In this document: positions 23,063 through 32,500 of the stretch, piece by piece
Position numbering within the stretch: the stretch's first letter is position 1
Layout: each line of letters starts with the position of its first letter
NCBI GenBank assembly: GCA_020536535.1
Contig: JAHLWZ010000048.1
Span: 1 to 61,511, forward strand
Length of the DNA stretch: 61,511 bases
DNA from: Pelomyxa schiedti
Taxonomy: Eukaryota; Protista; Evosea
Direction of reading: 5' to 3'
The notes under the pieces: generated by a model
What the model saw: the letters and a program-made list of their open reading frames with translations, nothing else
Databases searched by the model: none
Told to the model about the DNA's origin: nothing
Translations under genes and position numbers: made by a program

Positions 23063-23162
23063 NNNNNNNNNNNNNNNNNNNNNNNNNNNNNNNNNNNNNN
23101 NNNNNNNNNNNNNNNNNNNNNNNNNNNNNNNNNNNNNNNNNNNNNNNNNNNNNNNNNNNNNN

Positions 23163-25468
23163 GCGACTCCGTGGCCTGCCGGCGCCCCCCGCCCACGCCG
23201 CCCGCACCTAACCCTCCTCCTCCCCCCCGCACCTTCGTCATCCCACTGCCCCCCGGGGGTATCCCTCCATCGTCGCCATGCTGCTGCTGCGACGACGCCG
23301 ACGACGAGGAGGAGTTCACGCGAGGGGAGCCTAAGCCAGCCCTTGTGAAGTGGCCGCGGCTGGAGTGGCCAGGGTCCGCGAGGGCGGCTAACACGCCGTG
23401 GAACGTGGCTCAGAAGGAGCGCCGCTACAGGTTCGAGTTGATCCGCGACATCGTGGCCGCGGCTGAAGCTCTTGGTGACCATGGTGGAAACGAAAATGCA
23501 ACTGCAACTGCAAAAGGAAATGGAAATCGAAATCGAAATGTAGTAAGTGAAGGCGGAAGTGGAAGTGGTGGTGACACGGAATCAAACACAAAAAAAAGGA
23601 GGGGGGTAAGGGTGGTGATGATACCGCTTGTGTTCCCCAACGCGGGGAGCATGCTGGAATACTTGGAGAAGAAAGTCCGCACTGAGGAATCGTGGAAATG
23701 CTTAACGGGAAGCTACTCCACCAACTGGTTCTGCCGCCTCAGGAGCACTGATGAATTCCTGCCGGCAATTCCGGATGGGGAGGAGAGAAATGTGGTGCTG
23801 AGAGAGGTCATGTCCGGGTTCAAAATGGCCAGAGTATCTCGTGGGCCTCAGCCAGAAATGCTGAGACCCAACACAACTGCTCTTCCTCCTCTGAACGTGT
23901 GTAACTTAAAATTCTGCGTAGTGATCCAATCTTTTCCTACAGGAAACCCAAATATGCTTTGTGGAGAACCGCATCAAGTGGTCCCGGAAGAGGAAGTGCA
24001 TAGCGTGGGCAAGGAGACTCATGGAATCAGGTTGCAGGGAGGTGCTACTCTCCACAGCATGTAAGCATGCGTGGGCTGACTGGTATTCCAGGGAAACCCG
24101 CTCTGTGATATTTGGAAGTCCAGCTTGGAAGCTGATTCAGCGTACTATTTTTCCGAAGATTTTGTCAAAATCTCACCAAAATCAGGATCGTGCCATATTA
24201 TTTCAAGATCCCTAGTATATTTCCTCAGTGGCACACACCCACGGGCAGGAAAAGGCAGCACCCTTTCAATCCTGGGCCGTGACGTCATTAATAATATTCT
24301 TAAGTTATACACTGGCTTTAGTTGTGACGATTATTGGCAGAAGGAGCCACCTCTTACTGAATACGAAATTTTCCTACTGCCTTCTTCACGTACATGGATT
24401 CCCCCTGCGACAGAAAAGTTTCATGTTGCTGCTTTTGGGAACTACGACGTGGATGGACACCAAGCTGATATCCCGCTTCTATCCCGTATGTGTTTCTTCA
24501 CTCTTGCCGTGCTGACACAAAAAAAAGTAATTGCTGCTTATGCTCTCCTTTATGAACAAGGACCTTTCATTTCGCTTGAAAAGTTTATTCAGGGAGCTGG
24601 TAGTCCTCAACAACCTGCTTCATCTAACTTATTGTTATCCAGAGGCCGGGAATGTTGGAAATTTACAATGTTTTGCCTGTTTCAAAAGTGGTGCCTTTGC
24701 ACACACTCCGCAGGAGAGATTTATGGCCCTAAGGCTCTGTGAAACGCTATTTGGAGTTATTGGAGAAGAAAAAGAGAATCAGGTACAGACTACATTTCCT
24801 TTTGAATTAATGCTGAATTACTCTCGACAGTTCCGCAAGTGCTTTACTGGAGATGGCCTTGTTATAATGGGAGACGGGACCCGCAAGTTCTCCAACACTA
24901 ATTCTCACCTTATTCTCACTTTTACCAGGATGGTTTCCGAGGTTCAGAGAGGAGATTATGTCCGAACAGAATCTGGTGTTAAACCAGTATCCCTTATTGA
25001 GTGCCGGACAGTCAACAGTGTGATTCCAATGTGTGAAGTACTTGGGGTTTGGTTGACTCCCGGACATCCCGTTTTCATAGTATGGTTTGATATTTTCTCC
25101 CGGCCAACAAACCCACACAACAACCCAGAATGGGATGTGGTCTCACCCATTTGAGGTGACTGCCGTTCAGGAGCGGCATGTCACCGAACTGTTCAACTTT
25201 GAACTGGTTGGTGGTCCTCTATCACCAGACCACTCTGTGTGGATAAACGGCCTACTGGTTTGTGTGCCTGTGTAACTATCATCCGGTTGTTTCTAACAGA
25301 CACTGCACACACCAGGTTTGCACACTTGGAAAGGATTGCGGTGACAGAATAACAAGAGGTTGGCCCAAGGCTGATGATCAGGCAGGCACAGGATACTGGC
25401 GAAAAGCTTCATCTAATTGGTCCAAGTACATTTCTCACACCAACTCACCCTCAGGAGAGAGCAACTGA
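23163..25468 (+). CDS. Multi-exon protein with C-terminal Vint-type Hint domain; 5' end in gap
   Basis: 'CFTGDGLVIMGDG' from 24840, 'VQRGDYVRTESG', 'LTPGHPV', 'LFNFEL...HSVWINGLLVCTLG'. Short GT-AG introns (e.g. 24083-24123) join the ORFs. Confidence 0.8.
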
Positions 25469-26532: not shown

Positions 26533-28050
26533 ATGAGCAAGGCAGTGATATTAGTTGGCGGGTACGGGACAAGGTTGAGGCCGTTGACACTAACGACGCC
26601 GAAGCCCCTCGTCGAGTTTTGCAATGCTCCCACAATTCTCCATCAAATAAGGGCGTTGGCTGCAGTGCGTGGTTTTTTTACCTTCAATTTCCACCGTTGT
26701 GATTTCTTTTTTTTTTACTTGTCGTGTTATGTTGTATAACGAATAGAAAGAACGCATATTATTTGCATTAAGTTACAATATATACTGCATACTGGTAGTT
26801 AACGTACTATTGAAACAGGTTGGTGTAGTGGAAGTTATTCTCGCTGTGAGCTACAAGCCGGATCAAATGATGGAATACTTGGAACCACATCAAGGCAAAC
26901 TTGGTGTTAAGATAAGGTCAGCGCTGCATTATTACCTATTCCACTTACTTCTGCCTCAGGTATAGTCAGGAACTTGAACCACTTGGAACTGCCGGTCCAC
27001 TTGCTTTGTGCAGGGAATCCTTGACTGCTACAAACGATCCCTTCTTTGGTTTGCGATCTTCTATCTCCAAATTGTTAATATCCACATTCAGTGATGAATA
27101 GTGACATAACTTGCGAATTCCCACTCGCTGACATGCTTGCATTCCATAAGTATGGGCTATTGGTTTTATGTCTTACTCACGCCACACAGGAGGCACGGAC
27201 ATGAAGGCACTATTTTGGTAACTAAAGTGGAGGACCCTACAAAATATGGTGTAGTTGTCTTCGAGGAGACTGGTGGTTTGGTTTCTCGTTTTGTTGAGAA
27301 GCCAAAAACTTTTGTTGGTGATAAGATTAATGCCGGGGTTTACATACTACAACCTTCAATTCTTAACCGCATAAGGTAATTCCCTTTACCCCTCCCAACC
27401 CTAATCACGATGTAGGCCTGTGAAAACTTCAATTGAGAGGGAAGTGTTTCCTAATATGGCTTCTGAGGGCCAACTTCATGCCTTTGTTCTCCCTGGCTTC
27501 TGGATGGATGTTGGCCAGCCTAGAGACTACCTTCTCGGGACTCAGTTGTATCTTTCTCACATTGCGCAGCACAGGCCACAGCTATTGCACTCAGCCGAAG
27601 TAGTTGCATCAAATACAACAAGCACTTCCGCTTCTTCAGCTGCTGCGACAACCACTCCCCGTTATACTATAATTCAGCCGGCATTGGTGGATCCCACAGC
27701 GAGGTTGGGGGACGGGTGCGTGATTGGCCCAAATGTCTGCATAGGACCCAACTGCGTTGTGGGCGAAGGTGCTAGACTCAATAACACTACTATGCTTGAG
27801 GGCTCCATTGTCAAGGCACATGCTTGGGTACACACTTCTATCATTGGCTGGAAATCAGTTGTAGGCAAATGGGTTCGTATGGAAAACTTGTCCGTACTTG
27901 GTAAGCTTTCCTCATTTCCACACGTTGTTAATTGCCGCTTCTCTAGGGAAAGAAGTAACAATTGCCGATGAGCTCTACATCAATGGGGCTAAAGTGTTAC
28001 CATTCAAGGATGTTACAGCCTCTGTTCCTCTTCCTGAAGTTCTGATGTAA
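26533..28050 (+). CDS. GMPPB: Mannose-1-phosphate guanylyltransferase (GDP-mannose pyrophosphorylase, beta type)
   Basis: [60 protein letters not shown], hexapeptide repeats; multiple introns. Confidence 0.95.
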
Positions 28051-28149
28051 TGACACAAGCCACAACAACATTCCATTTATTATTGTGATTGCCATACAAA
28101 ACAAGAAAAAGAGGTTCTTTTTTTACATGAACACAAAAAATGACAGCTC

Positions 28150-29334
28150 TCACAAAAGGACGCATTTTCCAGAGGATGGTTTTTTCTCAGGTCCGCCAAG
28201 AGCCCGTATTTTCCTTACAACTTCAAAAAATGCTAGTTCTACATTGATTCGTTTCATAGCGGAAGCTGTATACAATTAGAAAATGAGGTGTGGTTTCAAA
28301 AAGAGAGGTTTCTTACTCTCGATATATTTGCATTGCCATTCTTGGGCCAGAGCTGTTGCATCTGCACTAGAGACTTGTCTTTCATTGTCCATGTCAGATT
28401 TATTGCCTTGTGTTAGCATTAGTTGTGGTTTGCAATTGCGTGAATTGCCGCACCTGCAAGGACCATTGGTATAGGTTCACTCAAATCTTTATCTTTCATT
28501 TTGTACAATCGCTTCCTTAGAATTGGAATGTCCTCGAACGACTGCGCTGCATTTATGGCAAACCTGTGTGGGTAAGTTAAAAGGAAACCAAAATTAGTGT
28601 TGTTTGAATTGCATACACCATCAAAAAGCCATGTCCTTCCATCATATACCGGTCCCGCATTGCTAAAAGTGGTTTTTTTCAATAAAGGAATCGTGAAGCA
28701 GAGTTACATACAGGAGTATCTAAATATACATTAAAGAGAAAAATTAAAAAAATTACACACTCGTCTTGGCCGGCTGTACAGGAACGGAGTTGTTGAATTA
28801 GTCATTGGAAATTGTAGAATAAAAGAACAATATTACCTGTATCCAGAATATCAAGCACAACGATTGTTCCGTCAATTTCCACTTGAGTTCTTAAGGCGAG
28901 GTCAAAGCATAAAGAAAGTTTGATAACAGACCTGTAACTATCTTCAATAGTCGGGTCATATATAGTGAGCTAGGTAATGACAAAAATGAAGTGAGAAACG
29001 CCATAATATCACGCAGTACATACACTGTTCATTATGTCAGGTAGGGAAATATAAAGGTGAGGTTTGTGTTTAATTTGAATAGGTAGGTTGTGGTGCTATG
29101 TAATACTAAGTTGCATTATCTGAGAAGAGGCAATACAGAAAACAACATACAATCGGTGAGAAATGAGCTGAATTGTCAGAGCAGACTTGCCAACAGAGCC
29201 AGAGCCCATAACTACAAGTTTATACAGTTGTTCCTATGCGTTTTTCAATTCATGTTTTTAGCTTTTGAAAACATTAAAAAACAGAAAACCCACAATGTCA
29301 AACAACTAAAAACACCAAAACAAACCCTAGGCAT
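28150..29334 (-). CDS. ras: Ras-subfamily small GTPase with microexons
   Basis: Spliced product [74 protein letters not shown]...NKSD...ETSA...CVLL (CAAX). Confidence 0.92.
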
Positions 29335-29531
29335 GTTTGATGCAGACTACAAAACTGAATGTTGTCGGCTGGAGGTGGTTGTGGGTTGTATCCCCAACGC
29401 AAACAAACGCCTTCTCTTCTTTGATTGATTATTGATCGCTGAGTGCTTGTTTCCGACGTTCCGTCCCGTGTCGGAATCAAAGGAATACCAGTTTCTATTT
29501 ATGGGAAGGAATTCTTAGCGGTGCACGTCCA

Positions 29532-32500
29532 CTACGGGTGCTGTTGTTCCTGCGTGGTGGTTGCTGTTGTTATTGTTGATGTTGATTGCGATGGGAATTG
29601 GTCAGTAGGTAGTAGTTGTTGTAGTGGTGGTGATGGTGGTGTAGTAGTGGTGGGAACAGTGGGTGATGGTGTTGCTGCTTGTGGTTTTGGTGCTAGATAG
29701 GCACGGCGGATGACTAGCTTGGGCTCGGGGGCCCGGGCGTGTGGTGTTTGTGGTTGGCCGGGGTTGTTGTTGTGTTGTGTGTGGGCGCTGGTGGGTATCC
29801 ATCGCTCCACGGCTAGTGCGGAACCAGAGGCCTTGCTTATGTCCAGAACGCAGAGCATTTCTAGTTGGTTTTTGGTGGGTCAGTAGTGTTGAGGTGAATG
29901 AGTTTACTACTAACCTCCGTCTCGGAAGCAAAGCGGCCGGTCGGTTACTTTGGTTTCTAGAGTGGGGAGAACCGGCCTCCTTGCTTGTTGTTGGCCTTTG
30001 CCTCCTTTGCCGGCTCCTGTTTGAGCGTTGCCCCTCTGGTTTTGCTTTTGCTGTTGGTTCTTTCCTTTATTTTTATTGGTGTTGCTGCTGCTGTTGTTTG
30101 CCGGTGTCTCTGCGGTTCCGCCAGTGGCCGGTGATTCTGTTGGGGGTGCACGGTTGTCTGTTGGGGTTTCCGTAACTGCGGGAGGAGTTTCGGGGGCAGT
30201 GGTTGTTGTTTTGGCGGCGGTATCTGGAGTAATCTGAGGTGCAGCAGTAATTTCAGTGGTTTCACTTTGTTGATGGACAATCTGTGACCACCTGGCAGCC
30301 GAAGCAGCACAGCGTGCAAGAAGCAAATTCTTGTCTTCTATATCGTACTTGGTTGCCAAAAGTGTACGTAATAGACCAAGAGTTGGAGTGGTGATGACAA
30401 TTTCTTGGTTCGGGTGGAAAAGACCTTTTCTCCAAGTAAATTAAATGATCTAAACTACAGTGGGTTCAATACCTGATTTTGGGTCCCGACAGCAACAGTA
30501 CAGTAAGATAGAGTCCGCTCCAAGGGAGATAATGGGGTCCACAGATTCGTTAACAAGCTAGTGGGGGATGTATTGATGAGATAATACGTATTCTGAGCAG
30601 ACCTCACCTGAATGGTAAGCAGTGCGTCAGAATAACCCACTTGAAGTTGCTTTAGGCTTTGCGACATCTTTCTCAAAAGTTTGCTTCCTTGCCACAGTCG
30701 AAAAATTGGTTTGTTCTACAAGAGTCATTTTCACAGTAACTACCAGAAAGATACACACCCCAGAAGGATTGGGAGGAAGTAATGGAGGGATAGTAGTGTC
30801 AAGCAATTCTCCAACAGTAGTGGAAAGCGGTACTTGGGCTTCACCAAGAAGGTTAATGTATTTACTGTGGCCGCCATTCCTCGAATCAGTATTCTTACTG
30901 TTTCGAGATGATAAAATAAGCAGGGGTGAAAAGTGCCCCGAGTACATGGTTTCATAACTGAAGGGAGTTACTACAAGCTCTCATGGTTATAATTACCTAG
31001 AGTTCTGTGATTCCTCTGCAGGTAAGTAATCGAACAGTTGGAAGCAAACCAAAGCCTCCCCTTTGGTGAGAGGCTATTGGGAATATATTTTAGTAAAGTG
31101 TTGAAGCTGTTAATAGCTCAAAACCTTTCCTTTTTCGAGAAAGATGTAGCCTCCATCAATTACTCCAGCTCTGTCTAACGGAACTGCTTCATCAACAACC
31201 AGATCTTCTCTTGGTTAGTCGTCGTGATAGGGAAAGTATCTCCAACCAGCAGGCATTTCAAAGATATCCGACTTCCGAAGCCTCACACTGCTGGCGTCAA
31301 TTCCAATTTGTTGGGCTGCAAGTTCTTTACTGTAAGTGAATTAATTGGTTAATAGAGTAACAAGATGAAGGAGACAAAACAACCATTCAGCCAGCGTGGT
31401 AGTTTTTGGGATCAACAAATTTATGACAGTCTGAGAAGCAGGAGTCTCCCCAAGAGCAGGAACATTCCACTTGACATTTACAGAATAAACTCCAGTGGCA
31501 GGTGTTCCAGGCTCGATTATGAGGCGCATACTGTCCTGCGAGGGGTTAAACACGTTTTAGAAGTTTTGTGATACTGAAATTCCGGCACTCGTGAGCTGTA
31601 TGGCATCCTCTAAAGATTCCCCAGGTGCCCCTCCAACAAGGCATCTTGAGACTTTCGATTCATTTCACTTTATTGGTTGTTTACCTTCGAAGAACTGTAG
31701 TTTCAACTGTATAATCCGCCAAGGGAACAGAATCAATCACTCTTTTTTTGAGGAAGGCAACAGCTGTGAGCTTTATTGAGAATAGTTTTGAACCAATAAA
31801 CTGGAAAAATACTAGAATCTTTTGGTACCACAATGGACCTTGAGAGCGCAGGTTGTATTGGGGTACACCAGTCGGTTATATATATTGTCATATCTGTGTC
31901 ATCGGGTATTTGTATCTAATAATTCATGAGTACAAGGCTTCGCATACTCTAGAAGTACTGGTGCATCTGTTGTTGACGACTTGGGGGCACTATCTTCTTC
32001 ATTGTTAAGAACTGACTCAAGGAAAACTTCATTGGAATCAAATAATTTGCTTTCAAATATTGTTGCCTTTTCTTCAACAAGACGAACCCTTTTGCCTCTG
32101 TCAACCTTGGGAAAATTAAGAAGGGAGCGGGAGAGAACAAAAGAACTTTGGTAATAATCTGTTGGTGAGGGGGGATTCCAGTAAGTTGATGAAGTTTTTG
32201 TCTCAAATCCGTAAGTGTTGAATTGAGGGGAATTCCAATACGAGCGCGGGCAGCTCCTTCATTTTTGCTGTGTTTCCAAGAAAGCTGGATTCTATTAATT
32301 AGTTTATTTTCGTTTAATACTATACCATGAGAAGAACGCTCGGCTGTTCTGGATTGTACAGCATTCCACTGATCATTTTCCCGTTCCATACAATAACGCT
32401 GGAGGCGGGTCTAATTGGAGTTTTCTTGATGGGAAGAGTTTTGTCATCTGTGAGATATCAGTCACAGACCCCTTGCAAAGGTGAAATACCATCTGATGTG

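Follow-up and report, generated by a model that had tools for sequence, protein, structure and literature searches.

A probable one-nucleotide exon in a Ras-family GTPase gene of the amoebozoan Pelomyxa schiedti

A single nucleotide is the physical minimum of an exon, and the documented exons of this size come from a few genes of plants and fungi only. A one-base nuclear exon was described in APC11 of Arabidopsis (PMC4674806), conserved one-base exons are known from APC11 and VPS55 of land plants (PMC8831610), the one found in CYP621A of Fusarium was called the second example by its authors (PMC12940212), and long-read annotation of Coprinopsis cinerea placed one-base exons in 13 genes (PMC12230235). 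These four reports bear out the original prediction in that one-base exons are rare and escape annotation. In the literature on one-base exons, searched without aiming at Amoebozoa, we met no amoebozoan case.

Here we describe a Ras-like gene of Pelomyxa schiedti whose third exon is, in all likelihood, a single T. As in plant APC11 and VPS55, one nucleotide lies between canonical GT-AG introns, the reading frame depends on it, annotation overlooks it, and there are homologues in which the base is fused to the neighbouring exon. The plant exons, however, have been demonstrated with RT-PCR, reporter constructs and junction reads, whereas the Pelomyxa case is built on sequence and paralogue comparison; moreover, the host is here an amoebozoan with introns of 40-130 nt, and the gene belongs to the Ras-family GTPases. 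With the exons of Fusarium and Coprinopsis it shares short introns, what would be intron-defined splicing, and a base placed inside the codon for a conserved residue, as well as the form of the argument, namely, phase compatibility together with an orthologue without the introns. Read or long-read support is available for the fungal exons, whereas Pelomyxa offers two paralogues with one intron each.

The window that we analysed comprises positions 1-61,511 of contig JAHLWZ010000048.1, and positions refer to it unless another contig is named. The assembly was built with SPAdes from Illumina and Nanopore reads of amplified single cells, five Smart-seq2 libraries are available, and the genome carries 7.43 introns per gene (PMC8887013). 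A run of about 34 X residues in the open reading frame translations at approximately 23063-23164 of the window corresponds to about 100 N, that is, to a scaffolding gap. The Ras-like gene occupies 28150-29334 on the minus strand, and our model divides it into 11 exons encoding 188 residues. On the plus strand, at 27420-28121, lies a convergent neighbour whose hexapeptide-repeat C-terminus resembles nucleotidyl- or acyltransferases; RNA contigs of two runs, X3 and X4, cover this neighbour and extend to 28121, within 30 nt of the Ras stop codon (28150).

The predicted product is a Ras-family GTPase (PF00071), and a divergent, lineage-specific paralogue within that family. All five nucleotide-binding motifs, G1-G5, are present in the spliced model, which contains the P-loop GSGSVGKS, the effector loop YDPTIEDSY, DTAGQ, NKSD, SAM and the C-terminal lipidation signal CVLL. 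The Pfam model was searched exon by exon, with a cut-off of 21.6 bits: exon 2 matched model positions 1-21 with 20.4 bits, and exon 10 matched positions 112-140 with 23.3 bits, above the cut-off. P-loop, effector loop, SAM and C-terminal CaaX box are common to this protein and to the Ras-family GTPases with the nearest structures, Rit1, KRas and HRas. Its identity to the two closest relatives from the same genome is 63% and 49%, and we place it at the level of the Ras family.

Ahead of exon 2 the frame is closed by a TAG, and an upstream exon with an ATG is therefore needed. The likely start is a short exon 1 at 29326-29334 on the minus strand, which would read ATG CCT AGG (Met-Pro-Arg) and be followed by GTTTGT; intron 1 would then extend over 29234-29325 (92 nt, GTTTGT...CATAG). 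Exon 2 itself (29151-29233, 83 nt), placed by Pfam and PDB matches, encodes 27 residues and ends on TT, the first two bases of a Phe codon, since the minus strand reads CTCACCGATT at 29160-29151 and continues with GTATGT at 29150-29145. Exon 4 (28932-28969, 38 nt), placed by alignment with KRas and by our local model, encodes 12 residues of switch I plus AG; its first base, 28969, falls within the minus-strand stretch 28975-28960, which reads ACCTAGCTCACTATAT (ACCTAG, then CTCACTATAT). We thus recovered the exon end at 29151 and the exon start at 28969 given in the original prediction, one base out of phase with each other.

Between these two exons the minus strand reads GAACAGTGTAT at 29030-29020 (GAACAG-T-GTAT), with the T at 29024, and AACAG, T and GTATGT stand where they had been reported, as a canonical acceptor, a lone base and a canonical donor. 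Hence two canonical GT...AG introns are separated by exactly one base. The upstream one, intron A (29025-29150, 126 nt, GTATGT...CCTGACATAATGAACAG, ending in AACAG), lies in phase 2 inside the Phe codon, and the downstream one, intron B (28970-29023, 54 nt, GTATGT...CATTACCTAG, ending in CCTAG), lies in phase 0 after it. The T between them, proposed as exon 3, would supply the third base of the conserved Phe28 codon, TTT, and restore the frame.

A local script was used to splice the model with and without this base. With the T, the 11 exons give an open coding sequence of 567 nt, or 189 codons including the stop, in which Phe28 is encoded, within the stretch of 19 residues that the original prediction had aligned with Ras without a gap. 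When the T is omitted, so that the end of exon 2, CACCGATT, is joined straight to CTCACT, the frame breaks right after Phe28 and then runs into stops. Retention of intron B gives TTT GTA TGT ACT GCG TGA, the TGA that the original prediction expected arriving as the sixth codon. Accordingly, the frame is open either with the T, which completes the Phe28 codon TTT, or with a weak alternative donor discussed below. A count over the 52.4-Mb genome, both strands included, gives 580 copies of the 9-mer AGTGTATGT, that is, of the T with its flanking splice signals, from which about 0.001 occurrences would be expected by chance in a stretch of 181 nt.

Comparison with solved structures, in which each exon was compared with PDB chains separately, so that the two flanking exons were matched independently, locates the residue that these two exons leave out. 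The best match of exon 2 is Rit1 (yklvvmgsgsvgksaltiqlishr), and it reaches the last residue of the exon, while matches to KRas, HRas and NRas extend up to native residue 26; the PDB matches as a whole end at Ras residues 26-27. The Rit1 residue that follows ISHR we take to be Phe, from the human RIT1 sequence. On the other side, ten residues of the exon 4/5 piece align with residues 33-42 of the KRas chain, which are native residues 32-41, and the fourth residue of exon 4, Tyr, aligns with KRas Tyr32, so that exon 4 starts at Ras residue 29. Exactly one residue is therefore missing between exons 2 and 4, namely, Phe28, and the split codon at the end of exon 2 already supplies its TT.

The strongest support for the one-base exon comes from two paralogues, each of which has an intron at one of the two positions. 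They were found by searching the same genome with the exon 2 and exon 4/5 pieces, which returned one close and one distant relative at the protein level; at the DNA level, no close paralogue was found in the genome. First, the closest paralogue (contig C709, 14047-17151, minus strand), with 62.7% protein identity, reads TCA CAC CAT TTT, an intron of 50 nt (GTAAGT...CCAAAG), and GTT TCG GTG TAC GAC CCT. It thus has the whole Phe codon followed by a phase-0 intron, which is position B only. From Phe28 through the G5 region (ETSA), all other intron positions of this paralogue match those of the Ras gene, including the ones that delimit the 13-nt and 8-nt exons described below. Second, the distant paralogue (contig C448, 118100-119100, minus strand), a Ras of 202 residues with 49% identity, reads ATG TCT CAC TT, an intron of 72 nt (GTACGG...CGTTTAG), and C ATT GAA TCA TAT GAT CCC. 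This is the only canonical splice solution that keeps the YDPTIED frame, it yields Phe again, and it places the intron inside the Phe codon in phase 2, which is position A only. With introns at both of these positions, the single base between them in the Ras gene would be an exon by homology on each side.

Among the Ras-family relatives in the genome, no homologue carrying both introns was found, other family members having their introns elsewhere in the Phe28 region, and the metagenome contigs gave no match to the last 29 nt of exon 2. Protein word searches with the stop-free pieces around exons 2 and 9 also returned nothing, which carries little weight because their length filter did not extend to a protein of 188 residues. 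The C709 gene has the CaaX box CCML and, towards its 3' end, an additional intron; the contig holds two copies of its 5' exon at a distance of about 15.5 kb, the second, identical 5' end lying at C709:8-106. The C448 gene has a K-Ras4B-like polybasic tail, the CaaX box CSVM and only two introns (72 and 112 nt).

Several further Ras-like loci were encountered in the genome. Rap1-like genes are present in several near-identical copies (L005-L011); in one of them (positions 958-1596 of locus L011, on contig C613, minus strand) the 63-nt intron that follows ...IEDSY preserves the frame and contains no stop, so that the unspliced gene reads as a single open reading frame of 212 residues. Leucine-rich-repeat-like sequence joined to a Ras-like domain was seen on contigs C795 (L016) and C4 (L015), the former with an apparent GC-AG intron (GCATGA...TTACAG, at about 1637-1699 of L016) after ...LDT, and the latter with an exon of 13 nt at DTAGQ, where the gene studied here also has one. 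Another Ras-like gene (L027; contig C520, 1-1200; MYKVVVVGDGGVGKSAITIQLTQ...) has an apparent 18-nt exon encoding the residues around Phe28.

To score splice signals, we built a donor matrix from 23 homology-supported introns of Ras-family genes of the same genome, 5 of them RNA-confirmed; an unsupervised intron finder run on about 85 kb of the genome converged on false signals, and the homology-supported set was used instead. On this matrix GTATGT, the donor of both intron A and intron B, attains the top score of 8.3 bits. The 23 family introns measure 39-92 nt (median 48 nt): intron B, at 54 nt, falls inside this range, intron A, at 126 nt, exceeds all of them, and a single undivided intron at the site would measure 177-181 nt. 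Branch-like YTNAY motifs stand 6-40 nt from the 3' end of the family introns, mostly at 9-24 nt; the corresponding motifs are CTGAC in intron A, where the A stands at 12 nt, and, in intron B, CTCAC (22 nt) and TTCAT (17 nt). These signals and lengths support two short introns over one long intron as the probable arrangement. As for the source of intron A, no other copy of it was found in the genome, which rules out the mobile 'introner' origin that we had considered.

The one-long-intron alternative that survives best would use a second donor, GTTGTT at 29146, 4 nt downstream of the end of exon 2, together with the acceptor at 28970. The resulting mRNA would read CGATTGTAT and then CTCACT, exchanging Phe28 for Leu-Tyr and making the loop one residue longer (HRLYLTIYDP). 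Such an intron would be canonical GT-AG and in frame, the downstream protein would be intact, and a T at position +3 does occur in donors of this genome (GTTTGT, GTTGGT, GTTTCA). However, GTTGTT scores 1.6 bits, with only 2 of the 23 family donors below it, and it overlaps the perfect GTATGT; the intron would span 177 nt against the 39-92 nt of the family; the Phe kept in both paralogues, in Ras and in Rit1 would be lost; and a residue would be added where both paralogues and the compared Ras and Rit1 sequences hold the spacing. In addition, the branch site inside the intron and the run of AACAG, T and GTATGT would have to be a one-in-a-thousand coincidence, and the paralogue introns at the two positions flanking the T would stay unexplained. 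We therefore regard the use of this donor as improbable, and the one-base exon as the better account of the site.

DNA reads bear on whether the base is merely missing from exon 2. The original prediction would have been refuted by genomic reads showing that a base is missing at either exon boundary. Logan contigs of two DNA runs, with word depths of 29 and 37, match the window at 27950-29550 identically and without insertion or deletion, and exon 2 ends on TT and not TTT in these reads, which makes the loss of a base by an assembly slip unlikely. Since both runs come from one sample, possibly the very source of the assembly, this agreement rules out a slip of the assembly, though not a true frameshifted allele.

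RNA contigs, for their part, cover the downstream half of the gene. A contig of 357 nt from run X3, with adapter at both ends, covers 28321-28887 and ends 82 nt short of the T; nothing on the Ras gene was found among the RNA contigs of run X4, and none of the contigs of X3 and X4 covers 28888-29334. The X3 contig begins at 28887, inside exon 5 (28837-28889, 53 nt), whose 3' boundary at 28837 it shows. Between 28662 and 28837 it contains 21 letters, the reverse complement of which is CCGGCCAAGACGA followed by ATACTCCT, that is, a 13-nt exon 6 (28761-28773) and an 8-nt microexon 7 (28712-28719), which encode part of switch II without a gap relative to Ras. The donor that the first reading had assigned to the 13-nt exon proved to be 2 nt off. 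Exon 8 (28617-28662, 46 nt) is bounded by the RNA joints 28662/28837 and 28561/28615 (cut at +2), and the latter joint also delimits exon 9 (28454-28563, 110 nt), which is 68% identical to the corresponding paralogue exon. A further joint, 28405/28453, leads into exon 10 (28317-28406, 90 nt), which carries NKSD, the G4 motif, and the Pfam match; splicing at both 28405/28453 and 28561/28615 is precise. The last exon, 11 (28150-28265), with the G5 motif SAM, the CaaX box and the TGA stop, follows from our local model. The gene is hence expressed, and two microexons in succession are spliced into its transcript. Taken together, the structures, the two paralogues, the splice signals and intron lengths, and the DNA reads with the RNA-supported microexons argue for the one-base exon as originally proposed.

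A second alternative is a real one-base frameshift, from TTT to TT, which would make the gene a non-functional allele or a pseudogene of recent origin, with the 181 nt forming one intron and AG-T-GTATGT present by coincidence. The paralogue on C709 has TTT followed by GT at the homologous place, so that loss of one T would yield the exon end that we observe, and the RNA contig stops before the site. Against this, the ten other exons are intact, with G1-G5 and the CaaX box in place, and the transcript is precisely spliced; the coincidence would have a probability of about 0.001, before a branch site 12 nt upstream is also demanded; an intron of 181 nt is outside the family range; and the C448 paralogue, with TT followed by GT, indicates that this is a genuine intron position. 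We give the frameshift a slimmer chance still.

Finally, the frame could be restored by a 10-nt exon, TGTATGTACT, which starts like the T after intron A, is the only other stop-free, frame-restoring, AG-flanked microexon in the 181 nt, and would use the GC donor GCGTGA, or by a non-canonical TA-AG or GT-TA intron giving TTG (Leu), but the former, although GC-AG introns make up 1.59% of the introns of this genome next to 98.4% GT-AG (PMC8887013), would pass over a perfect GTATGT for a rare GC donor and lengthen a loop of fixed size by three residues (Phe-Val-Cys-Thr), and the latter is at odds with a genome in which a single GT-GG intron is the only one beyond GT-AG and GC-AG among 149,016 (PMC8887013), so that we consider both the least credible of all.

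Under the one-base exon, two splicing reactions would take place at nearly the same point. In organisms with short introns, splice sites are recognised by intron definition, that is, across the intron. We suggest that each of the two introns would be recognised as a unit through its own donor, branch site and acceptor, in which case recognition across the exon would be unnecessary. Only one base separates the acceptor of intron A from the donor of intron B, so that both could hardly be bound simultaneously, and removal of the two introns would probably be sequential. Either order may work: if intron A were removed first, exon 2 would read ...CGATTT directly followed by GTATGT, and if intron B were removed first, ...AACAG would be followed by TCTCACT, each of these being an ordinary substrate for the second step. 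Skipping of the T would give a frameshifted message. The mature mRNA would most likely retain the T.

This arrangement resembles two described types of splicing. At the ratchet point (zero-nucleotide exon) of recursive splicing, one long intron is removed in steps and no base is left in the mRNA; in fungal stwintrons, the inner intron sits within the donor, branch site or acceptor of the outer one. The Pelomyxa site shares with both that two reactions take place at nearly one location, probably one after the other, and that the first removal puts a donor directly against the upstream exon. It would nevertheless be neither: unlike at a recursive splice site, a base needed for the frame stands between AG and GT and would be retained, and unlike in a stwintron, donor, branch-like motif and acceptor are complete in each intron before the other is removed.

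The distribution of the two introns also suggests how the exon may have arisen. The Ras gene and the C709 gene are each other's closest relatives, and the C448 gene is more distant; position A is common to the Ras gene and C448, and position B to the Ras gene and C709. On the simplest histories, drawn here from pairwise relationships, both introns and the one-base exon would have been present in the ancestor of the Ras gene and C709, with a later loss of intron A from C709. The one-base exon would thus be ancestral and not a recent accident. It is tempting to speculate, although we advance this only tentatively, that the exon is old and that the spliceosome of P. schiedti routinely handles exons of 1-3 nt, a view in keeping with the RNA-supported 8-nt and 13-nt exons of this transcript.

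The paralogues, one with the first intron, one with the second, and the Ras gene with both, show a possible origin of a one-base exon, namely, two intron positions that lie one base apart. The exon leaves Ras biology as such unchanged. As standard gene finders and read aligners cannot model an exon of one base, correct annotation of this Ras gene, and probably of others in such an intron-dense genome, will require methods that take microexons into account; for the plant exons, RNA-seq reads had to be mapped with the junctions given to the aligner (PMC8831610). An amoebozoan case would extend one-base exons to a third eukaryotic supergroup. If the tentative view of an old exon and a tolerant spliceosome is true, a one-base exon has been kept through about 37% protein divergence, and P. 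schiedti would be a natural system in which to study the lower limit of exon size.
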